Shown piece after piece: positions 21,801-24,800 of a DNA stretch of 64,000 nt. The stretch is taken from NCBI RefSeq assembly GCF_964194025.1, contig NC_134479.1, forward strand, positions 44,888,001 through 44,952,000, in the 5' to 3' direction. Made by a program: the position numbers and the translations under genes. Each line of letters opens with the position of its first letter. Within the stretch, counting starts at the first letter, position 1. The DNA comes from Convolutriloba macropyga (Eukaryota). The notes under the pieces are model-generated. The model had not been told where the DNA came from, did not search any database, and saw only the letters and a list, made by a program, of their open reading frames with translations.

Positions 21801-24800
21801 TTATTTTCCATGTTTTTTTCGGACGTCGGGAAGAGTAGTGGATTGATTAAATGTGCTATCCAGCCACTTTAAAAATTTGAAAAAACAATTTTGAAGTGAC
21901 TGGATAGCAGATTTAATCCACTGCTGAAAAGAGGTGTGAAAGGGGTGTAGCTTCACCCTTTCTAAAGCTGGATGAGATGCCCAGCGAAATAGCCAAAAAA
22001 ATTATCAATACAAATGCGTCAAAAAGTATATTATGATAAATTAAACTATTTTAATGCATGACTACCCTTTTTAAGGATACATAACTTCTACAAAGATCAA
22101 CCAAACCTTCCATAACACGGGCGCCGGAACTTGGGGTTTCAATGACGAGGTGAAGAACTTCATCGCTGAGAACTATAAGTTCCTCAGTACCAACGTCGAC
22201 TCAAAGCAAGACCAGGCCTATTGGTACCAAGTGGGTCTCATTATGTACCAGATCAAAGGAATTGAAGATGCCTATCTTGGGATCTTACCCATTGTCTCAA
22301 AAGATATTGATCCTTCAGGTAAGATTTTTCCAAAAAGTTTTTCAAATAAATTCTTTCAAGAATTTTCAACCATGCGCAAATTTCCAATGTATCATTTTTG
22401 AAGTTGCGCTTCAGTATAAAACTTATGGCGAATTTTGAAAGGCAATAAGAAATTTGAAAGAAACATAAACCGAATAACATAAACTGAAAACTAAACATAA
22501 ACTTAAAAAAAGAAACACGTTTACAATAATTGCTTCAAAGTTAGTTCGAGAGCAATTAAACACTTCAAGATATGTCTCAATTCTTTGCATTTTTCAACCT
22601 AGAGATCATGTCAAAATGTCATTAGATACAGTGCAATATATGCGATCGTGATCTTAGGGCCACTATGGGAGTTTCAATGGCAAATGGGCGAACTGTCAGA
22701 TTTGACAATAAAGTTCGAAGCGGGCGAAATCAAGGTCAACTCATTTTCATGCAGTGCTTTAATTCGAAACCTCGACTACGATATCATAGCTTCACACGAC
22801 ACTTGGGGTGACTACATTATGATGCTGCGAATTATCAAAAAGTTTATCTTGCCTTATAAATCAAGCCAGGGTTCCGTGGCAACCATTGCGGGCTCAACAA
22901 TTTTAGAAAGTTCATACGCTGGAATCGTGAACTCTGTTGATGATTACTACCAAACTGGGCAAAACTTGGCAGTTTTTGAAACCACAAACGGGATCCAAAA
23001 CTCAACCCTGTACGACTACATAGTACCGGATACTGTACCATATTTCCTACGGGTAACGGTTGCAAATCGGTTAAGTAGCTCAGGAAAAGAATGGGTTGAT
23101 TACTTTGCCAAATTCAACTCTGGGACTTACAACAACCAATGGATGATCGTTGATTACAAACAATTCACGCCCAACCAAACCATACAGCCCGGAACCTTGT
23201 ATGTTTTGGAACAACTACCCGGGTTTATAATGTCGAAAGACATGTCAAGTTTTCTGATGACAGGGGAAAAGGCGTGGGTCAGTTATAATGTTCCCTACTT
23301 TCCCGAAACGCAAGCGAGAAACAACTATACAGCCTATATTAACGCGTACGGTTTGTTCTATTCACACGACCAATGTCCCAGAGCAAATATTTTCAGACGC
23401 GACCTGCCTAAAGCTGTTGACTTGAACAGCACAATCGGGATCAATTTCCTTGCGTTTCTCCTATAAATAAGCTTTTTAATTAAGAAAGCACATCTTTCAT
23501 TTAATTTGCCGCAGATATTGCTGAGAAACAGTTACCAAAAGTTCATAATCTTAGGTATAAAATTTCCAGAGAAAGGCTATCTTCAAACTCTAATAAAATG
23601 TATCTCAAAAATATCCCGCATAGAACACCAATCAATCCATGCATGAATAACCAATCATGCACAAGAGCAACTTTCTGAAACTCAACAACCATTCATAACT
23701 TTATTTTGTAATGGAAACTGATCGAATGAACGATTAACAACAGCTCTGATGCGCTACAATGACTTCCAAAATGACCCCTACGCAGCTTGTAACTGCACTC
23801 CTTTGGGATACAGCGCTGAGAATGGCATCAGTGCCCGGTGTGAATTAAACCCACTCAATGGAACTTATCAAATTGCTTCCGAGGGTGCAAGGTACGAATC
23901 TTAATAACATGCTTAATGTACAAACATACCCAAAATGCTAACATGTTCAACATTCTAAAACTTTCTTAGAAAAGAAAAATCGACTGATCTACATAATTCA
24001 ATTTATATTTTAATAACATAGCTGGCAGATTGCCAGAAAATAGCCGCAATAGATTCGTAGATCGGCAGTCTAAAAAAAACAGTAAAAAAGACAGACCAAA
24101 AAAATTTATCTTTTCATTGAAGGCTGATCTGTTATATTTTGATTAAAAATCTGTATAAGTTATTGCTGCCTCTATTAGCTGATCGCCAATAACCTTCATT
24201 TAGAGTGATACACACCCATTTGACCTTATCTCTTTGAATTAAAGTAAATAAAAGTCAATTTCAAAGTGAGGAAGTCACTTTTGAGAGTGAGGTAAGTCAA
24301 GTGTGACCAAAAATTTAATCACGCGCATGAACAAAAAAACTCGCTCCACTAAGAGCGAAAAATGACGTCACACATGCAATTCAATTGAAATTGCATGAAC
24401 GAATGAACAAAAAATGGCTGTGACGTCATATGGTCGTAACAAAAATCATGACGACGAAATAAAAAACATAGCCGGAAGAATTCCGGAAGCGACTCGAATC
24501 ACCAAAACTTCACAAAAAGCTGAAGCCATTACCTTTTATATTAATCCATTAACTCATTACCTCCCCGGGTCTGATCTAAAAATCGGTGAAATTTAAACCA
24601 CTGTCACCAAGAGAAAGAAAATGCAGCAAAATTTTATTATTGAAAACGTTTGGTATCGTTAAAAAAGTCTTGAAATTTTTAGCATGGTCGAAAAGCTGAT
24701 AGCTTGACAAAGCTGACAGGGCCATCAATTGCCCTCAGATAATTATTGATTCTAATCTCAAAAAGATCGCGAAAGCAAACGTCAGATAAAAACTTTTCAA

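Follow-up and report, generated by a model that had tools for sequence, protein, structure and literature searches.

A GG-AG intron in a PLBD2-like phospholipase B gene of the acoel Convolutriloba macropyga

Few rules of eukaryotic gene structure are as rigid as the one that introns start with GT (or GC), and frequent exceptions are known from only a few animal lineages. Is this rule broken in the acoel Convolutriloba macropyga? The question is raised by a stretch of 64,000 nucleotides (nt) of its genome (assembly GCF_964194025.1, contig NC_134479.1, positions 44,888,001 to 44,952,000; hereafter the window, from whose first letter all positions are counted unless another contig is named), in which a first-pass annotation made from the letters claimed that the third intron of a phospholipase B (PLB) gene starts with GG instead of GT. 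The locus is a clean and well-controlled case, bringing together a conserved enzyme, an unambiguous alignment, RNA-derived contigs, a confirmed genomic base and an intron-free positional orthologue.

The host gene and the junction of intron 3

The plus strand of the window carries, at 21390-26827, an intact phospholipase B-like gene (Pfam PF04916) with five exons (Table 1), whose boundaries were placed with the closest full-length homologues (tblastn with the acoel homologue P0003). Translation of the joined exons gave an open frame from ATG to stop that encodes a 549-residue product, with a signal-peptide-like N-terminus and a stop at the position common to its relatives, in keeping with the first-pass statement that the rest of the gene is intact. 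Exon 3 alone matched PF04916 with an E-value of 1.1e-78, and the protein as a whole matched the structures of mouse PLBD2 (3FBX/3FGR) and bovine PLBD1 over its full length. The Cys of the SFSCSAL motif aligned with the first residue of the mouse PLBD2 40 kDa chain, which gives the protein the N-terminal nucleophile of PF04916. Identity to acoel homologues amounted to 83-90% in exon 4 and 55-61% in exon 5. Compared with the PLBD2 family, the gene is ordinary (full-length match, autocleavage Cys and domain order kept, an acoel orthologue named PLBD2-like) except for its introns and its nesting within a Copine gene.

Exon 3 ends with ...ACA ATC G at 23437 and intron 3 opens with GGATCA, the GG lying at 23438-23439. 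At the other end, an in-frame TGA (23719-23721) is followed by a single AG (23742-23743) before the LMRYNDF codons, so that exon 4 begins at 23744, in phase 1. The GTs near the end of exon 3 (23406 and 23454) are both in phase 2, and a GC site at 23428|23429 is in phase 1 but costs three residues. In the genomic DNA, intron 3 therefore has G at +1, G at +2 and AG at its 3' end; a cut shifted by one base (GG...CA) yields the same mRNA and an intron that still opens with GG, so the GG start holds for either cut.

In the PF04916 match, exon 3 leaves the profile at position 389 (residue S257) and exon 4 resumes at position 393 (L), so that T, I and the split-codon A occupy positions 390-392 exactly. 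The distance from the F.RD motif to LMRYN was 16 residues in 53 of the 55 homologues having both motifs; it is also 16 in the window gene when the GG site is used, and 13 when the GC site is used. In the codon alignment, the orthologue of the acoel Symsagittifera roscoffensis has the same letters as the spliced product across the junction (NSTIALMRYN). Judged by frame and alignment, the GG junction alone fits the family spacing. The first-pass annotation had reached the same view, naming the ATCG|GGATCA junction, 23743 as the only usable acceptor, the lack of a phase-1 GT, the PLBD2 spacing kept by the GG joining and a GC fallback that deletes three residues, and each of these statements was borne out.

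A donor at 23428|23429 would replace the GG by the commonest non-GT donor of animals, in the right phase. Against its use stands the loss of the three residues, which breaks both the spacing of the homologues and the Pfam match, and further evidence came from the RNA-derived contigs described below.

The base at 23439 and removal of intron 3 from RNA

Public sequencing runs were compared over 21300-26900 as assembled contigs. The four runs, X1-X3 (2024) and X5 (2016, another study), come from three samples and from two studies eight years apart, and none of them is labelled RNA. X1-X3 were read as DNA because of their flat depth of ~65 over exons and unique intron parts, while X5, labelled 'DNA?', behaves as RNA, holding spliced contigs. 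Each of the three DNA runs has a 1527-nt contig on 22510-24036 with 0 differences from the window, and their depth on intron 3 equals the single-copy exon depth.

As the first-pass annotation had pointed out, the base at 23439 is critical: if the true base there were T, the GG being an assembly error or an allele, intron 3 would be an ordinary GT-AG intron. This explanation is favoured by the rarity of GG donors in most animals (for human, PMC5714493 quotes 0.014%) and by the loss of rare variants from contigs. The contigs of all four runs nevertheless carry G at this position with 0 differences, and the unspliced RNA contig of X5 shows no branch at 23439. The G at +2 is real, and a hidden T is exceedingly improbable.

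In X5, a spliced contig of 1308 nt (depth 122.5) joins 21385-21666, 22073-22316 and 22656-23437; both intron 1 and intron 2 are left out at the GT-AG borders, and the contig ends with base 23437. Because its segments skip these two introns, the contig was taken to derive from complementary DNA (cDNA). An unspliced contig of the same run covers 23408-23772 (depth 19.1, 0 differences). Its ends lie 30 bases outside the intron (23408 = 23438 - 30; 23772 = 23742 + 30), the last private base of the unspliced branch being 23742 and not 23743, since the same letter, G, stands at 23743 and at 23437. Logan contigs are built with k=31, and the 30-base overlaps seen in X5 agree with this value. The contig ends at 23408, 23437 and 23772 are thus the branch points of a k=31 graph for the junction 23437|23744, with both forms coexisting. 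The canonical acceptor of intron 4 served as an internal control in X5, where an unspliced contig (26319-26656) and an exon 5 contig starting at 26627 show the same 30-base overlap.

These contigs also bear on the GC site. The spliced contig passes 23428 without a branch and at full exon depth (122) and reaches 23437, whereas splicing at the GC site would place breaks at 23428 and 23399, and the unspliced contig begins at 23408. Use of the GC donor is accordingly very improbable.

Depth in X5 was 19 on intron 3, ~120 on exon 3, 97 in the bin with exon 4 and 3-5 on the other unique intron parts. By these depths and the contig ends, intron 3 is mostly removed. The unspliced form stands at ~16% of exon depth, a retention ~4-5 times that of the GT introns 1 and 4, which fits the expectation for a weak donor. 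This fraction is also what could be said for the view that intron 3 is kept and the gene is decaying or truncated, either as a pseudogene or with a product terminated by the TAA at 23464, a possibility that the first-pass annotation had raised. Such a view is hard to credit, as the depth of the exon 4 bin resembles that of exon 3 and not that of the intron, the exon 3 contig branches right at the exon end, and exons 4 and 5 still resemble acoel homologues and stay open up to the shared stop. Strong indirect RNA evidence thus identifies intron 3 as a real GG-AG intron that is spliced from an expressed, intact gene.

Probable gain of the introns and recognition of the donor

The nearest named homologue is the PLBD2-like protein of S. 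roscoffensis (P0156), which is 64% identical and encoded by a single, intronless open frame of 1659 nt. In both species an intron of a Copine gene (C2 / Copine / vWA) on the opposite strand harbours the PLB gene, and the shared nesting together with the order and orientation of the Copine exons (Table 1) makes the two PLB genes positional orthologues. The Copine intron that holds the PLB gene measures ~14 kb here and <3 kb in S. roscoffensis (L004). In the tree, the window gene pairs with P0156 (support 100/99) within a clade made up only of acoel sequences, and the remaining members of this clade were recovered as single open frames. A paralogue in the same genome (L002; G000 contig 4, 61759805-61760578) is intronless, with a 550-residue open frame and 62% identity, the P0003 gene is likewise intronless, and the tree holds at least three intronless subclades of the acoel PLBD2-like family.

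In the codon alignment, the four introns of the window gene are clean insertions, each directly after a G, into a coding sequence that is gap-free and has lost no bases. None of the PLB introns of Nematostella and Branchiostoma lies at any of these four positions. An ancient position for intron 3 was considered and rejected, the nearest Nematostella/Branchiostoma intron lying 10 nt downstream, in phase 2, in the R codon of LMRYND; missing from the orthologues, the position of intron 3 is lineage-specific. On the simplest reading, the ancestral acoel gene would have been intronless and the four introns inserted later in the Convolutriloba lineage. Alternatively, all four introns could have been lost at once in S. 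roscoffensis by cDNA conversion.

As the unusual ends of intron 3 might point to the minor spliceosome, a U12-type origin was weighed. U12-type introns have a strongly conserved 5' site, RTATCCTT, and a branch site, TCCTTAAC, usually at least 10 nt from the 3' end. A survey of U12-type introns reportedly names GG-AG and GA-AG (PMC2831892). Intron 3 faintly recalls the 5' site and the branch site of this type, with ATC at +3 to +5 and TTAAC close to its 3' end. The start of the intron, GGATCAAT, however matches only 5 of the 8 positions of RTATCCTT, and 6-7 nt separate the TTAAC from the AG, fewer than is usual, so that neither a U12-type 5' site nor such a branch site is present. No match to U11, U12 or U6atac was found in the genome, among the ~40 candidates scored out of 40,000-140,000, with the controls silent. 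A U12-type intron is unlikely. Within the intron, TTAAC (23734-23738) is a predicted branch-site-like motif, and an ACTGAT motif occupies 23717-23722.

With the canonical 5' end of U1, the donor TCG|GGATCA pairs at three scattered positions only (-1G, +1G and +3A). The first-pass annotation had suggested variant U1 or U6 small nuclear RNAs (snRNAs), which were not found: at least 12 of the best 20 U1 copies begin with the canonical ATACTTACCTGG, and U6 has normal ACAGAGA and AGC elements. A specialised U1 was considered in four copies that start with TTGATTACCTGG and for which a shifted register would allow pairing with GAUCAA. It was rejected because the four have identical upstream sequence, unlike any canonical copy, and they were read as 5'-truncated copies in a repeated unit. 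These copies (L013-L016, on G000 contigs 15 and 7) score well otherwise, and their upstream sequence is identical over at least 77 nt. Altered 5' ends were also seen in single U1 copies (L022, L023, L025, L028 and L029). The altered U1 copies are probably pseudogenes or copies inside a repeat. With U1 and U6 canonical and the TTGATTACCTGG copies apparently truncated, there is no sign of a compensating snRNA. Given the weak match to U1, recognition of the donor would probably rely on a spliceosome that accepts whichever base stands at +2.

The ends of intron 3 may themselves contribute. The exon end and positions +2 to +16 of the intron can pair with a segment 8-35 nt upstream of the AG (Table 1) in a predicted duplex of -15.4 kcal/mol (RNAduplex), the intron ends contributing 10 pairs over 12 positions and the exon end 5 more; 2% of random window 45-mers do as well, a modest significance (p ~0.02). 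This pairing would leave the +1 G unpaired and set both junctions a few bases apart. It is missing from the minimum-free-energy fold of the whole intron, which has no end-to-end helix (z -0.78), and a repeat finder with seed 6 reported no terminal inverted repeat. At intron 1, the first 9 bases are the perfect reverse complement of a 9-base segment 10 nt before the AG, and the duplex of its ends (-19.4 kcal/mol) is matched by 0.17% of random 45-mers. No end pairing was seen in introns 2 and 4. Intron 1 has AAG on either side of the insertion, is missing from the S. roscoffensis orthologue and is single-copy, a genome search having found no other copy.

A candidate for a second G|GGATC start lies elsewhere in the window, in a C-type lectin-like gene whose first intron (48889-49301; exon 1 from the ATG at 48793, exon 2 from 49302) would end with AG and gives a working frame. 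In this intron, 7 bases located 16 nt before the AG are complementary to its start. A common element behind this intron and intron 3 was rejected, as alignments of their ends show no homology past GGGATC.

It was therefore also considered that the same junction is used but that removal is guided mainly by the pairing of the intron's own ends and not by normal U1-dependent recognition, for instance by a spliceosome acting on a pre-folded substrate. The few positions of donor-U1 pairing, the possible duplex at intron 3, the inverted ends of intron 1 and the matching 3' arm of the lectin intron are in favour of this; the modest significance, the unpaired introns 2 and 4 of the same gene and the lack of homologous introns for covariation are against it. 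We regard a leading role of the pairing as doubtful. As an aid to the normal machinery, pairing of the exon end and the 5' end of the intron with the segment upstream of the AG may help by bringing the splice sites together, and the pairing of intron 3 is in this sense suggestive. Cutting by IRE1, the nuclease of unconventional splicing, was rejected, as the junction bases, compared by eye, do not fit the IRE1 loop motifs.

Intron 3 has no other copy in the 1.18 Gb assembly. No target-site duplication was found at its ends, which share only a G (23437 and 23743) with no duplicated coding bases. A transposon origin is plausible by analogy with other systems, yet for intron 3 it is unsupported because target-site duplication and second copy are lacking and the DNA depth is that of a single copy.

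Taken together, the best explanation is that intron 3, lying in a gene that is expressed and intact, is a true spliceosomal GG-AG intron, removed at 23437|23744, most likely of U2 type, and gained in the Convolutriloba lineage together with three GT-AG introns by a gene that was ancestrally intronless; we give this a probability of roughly 0.85. Within it, the spliceosome type, the role of the pairing and an origin by insertion of an element are what we infer. Several points count against this explanation. The runs were compared as contigs and not as raw reads, and contigs drop rare alleles. No contig bridging 23437|23744 was among the 15 matches listed out of 840, in which intron 4 repeats dominate, so that splicing at the exact point is deduced from contig ends and depths. 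No transcript-derived protein across the junction was found in the protein collections, where queries with P0003 and exon 3 gave only the unspliced open-frame P0001 and homologues at most 64% identical. Intronless relatives are over-sampled, since open-frame calls yield full-length proteins only for intronless genes. To these are added the modest significance of the end pairing and its absence from the whole-intron fold and, as regards a transposon origin, the single copy and the missing duplication.

The features of the locus are collected in Table 1. Introns 2 and 4 contain repeats (22422-22608, 23918-24665 and 25975-26348) whose summed contig depth in the same runs is 80,000 to 2 million, against ~65 for single-copy sequence. 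Many contigs join 24447-24465 to 26264-26268, which indicates that shorter copies of the element, without ~1.8 kb, are common at other places in the genome. None of the ten other longest open frames in the window had a Pfam match.

Table 1. Features of the PLB locus, with positions in the window.
Feature	Position	Strand	Basis
Exon 1, PLBD2-like	21390-21669	+	ATG 21390; tblastn with P0003; X5 spliced contig 21385-21666; model translation
Intron 1, GT-AG, 406 nt	21670-22075	+	absent from X5 spliced contig
Exon 2	22076-22318	+	homologue match; X5 contig; PF04916 positions 66-110
Intron 2, GT-AG, 339 nt	22319-22657	+	strong donor CAG|GTAAGA; absent from X5 spliced contig; depth table
Exon 3, phospholipase B domain core, with autocleavage Cys (SFSCSAL)	22658-23437	+	Pfam; structures; X5 contig end
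Intron 3, GG-AG, 306 nt, phase 1	23438-23743	+	frame; spacing; X5 contig topology; no counterpart in orthologue or paralogues
GG donor dinucleotide, context ATCG|GGATCA	23438-23439	+	sequence; no differing letter in four runs
5' arm of possible end-pairing	23433-23453	+	last 5 exon bases and intron +2 to +16; RNAduplex
3' arm of possible end-pairing	23708-23735	+	ends 8 nt before AG
Exon 4, begins with conserved LMRYNDF	23744-23891	+	PF04916 positions 393-427; acoel homologues
Intron 4, GT-AG, 2737 nt, full of very high-copy repeats	23892-26628	+	homologue mapping; X5 contig ends
Exon 5, stop TGA 26825-26827	26629-26827	+	homologue mapping; translation
Copine exon matches	36748-36611, 29548-29402, 27761-27624, 13323-13189	-	flank the PLB gene in the same order and orientation as in S. 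roscoffensis

Relation to known introns and meaning

The first-pass annotation had likened intron 3 to introns of the copepod Eurytemora affinis, in which GA/GG donors make up ~12% of introns, are recent and need an exonic AG and an A at +3 (Robertson 2017, PMC5714493). Part of this comparison stood. In both animals the introns interrupt nuclear protein-coding genes, with G at +1, a base other than T or C at +2, A at +3 (here the GGA at 23438-23440) and an ordinary AG acceptor, and they are lineage-specific, apparently recently acquired and such as to defeat standard gene modelling. The exonic requirement did not carry over, the exon end being obligately AG in Eurytemora but CG here. Moreover, GA outnumbers GG in the copepod and end-pairing is not described there, and the two animals belong to different phyla (Arthropoda and Xenacoelomorpha), the window being assigned to an acoel by its nearest homologue and by conserved synteny.

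In Fritillaria borealis, a tunicate (Henriet et al. 2019, via PMC11282704; see also PMC13326754), non-canonical introns are abundant and occupy species-specific positions, while canonical introns occupy conserved ones. The non-canonical introns carry inverted repeats and target-site duplications and are believed to derive from transposons, and the U2-type spliceosome is believed to have become tolerant (PMC11282704). Intron 3 resembles the Fritillaria introns in its lineage-specific position and perhaps in its inverted ends. It differs in keeping the G at +1 and the AG, where the tunicate introns mostly have AG-AC or AG-AT ends, and in being a single copy without target-site duplication, where the tunicate introns form repeated families; in addition, the GT-AG introns beside intron 3 are themselves new.

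Introners and gains of the type of miniature inverted-repeat transposable elements (MITEs), known from Micromonas, Aureococcus and others, come in many near-identical copies with target-site duplications of 3-8 bp (review PMC11282704). Intron 3 shares with them a clean insertion in coding sequence at a proto-splice-like site (after G) and perhaps short inverted ends, but shows neither near-identical copies nor a target-site duplication. Literature searches found no paper on GG/GA-type donors or non-canonical splicing in acoels. Intron 3 belongs to a known but rare kind of intron, reported so far from few animal groups.

A broader proposal can be put forward tentatively, with the odds still against it: convolutid acoels may be a further animal lineage in active intron gain, independent of copepods and appendicularian tunicates, whose major spliceosome would accept G followed by any base and whose new introns would be recognised largely by end pairing instead of U1 complementarity, the G|GGATC start that recurs in the window marking one source element.

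For genome annotation the consequence is practical. Standard annotation pipelines that insist on GT or GC will cut genes of this genome short or join them wrongly, so that the acoel gene sets used in comparative work are probably affected. With this locus, acoels, as early-branching bilaterians, become a further group in which to study how introns are gained and how donor recognition is relaxed.

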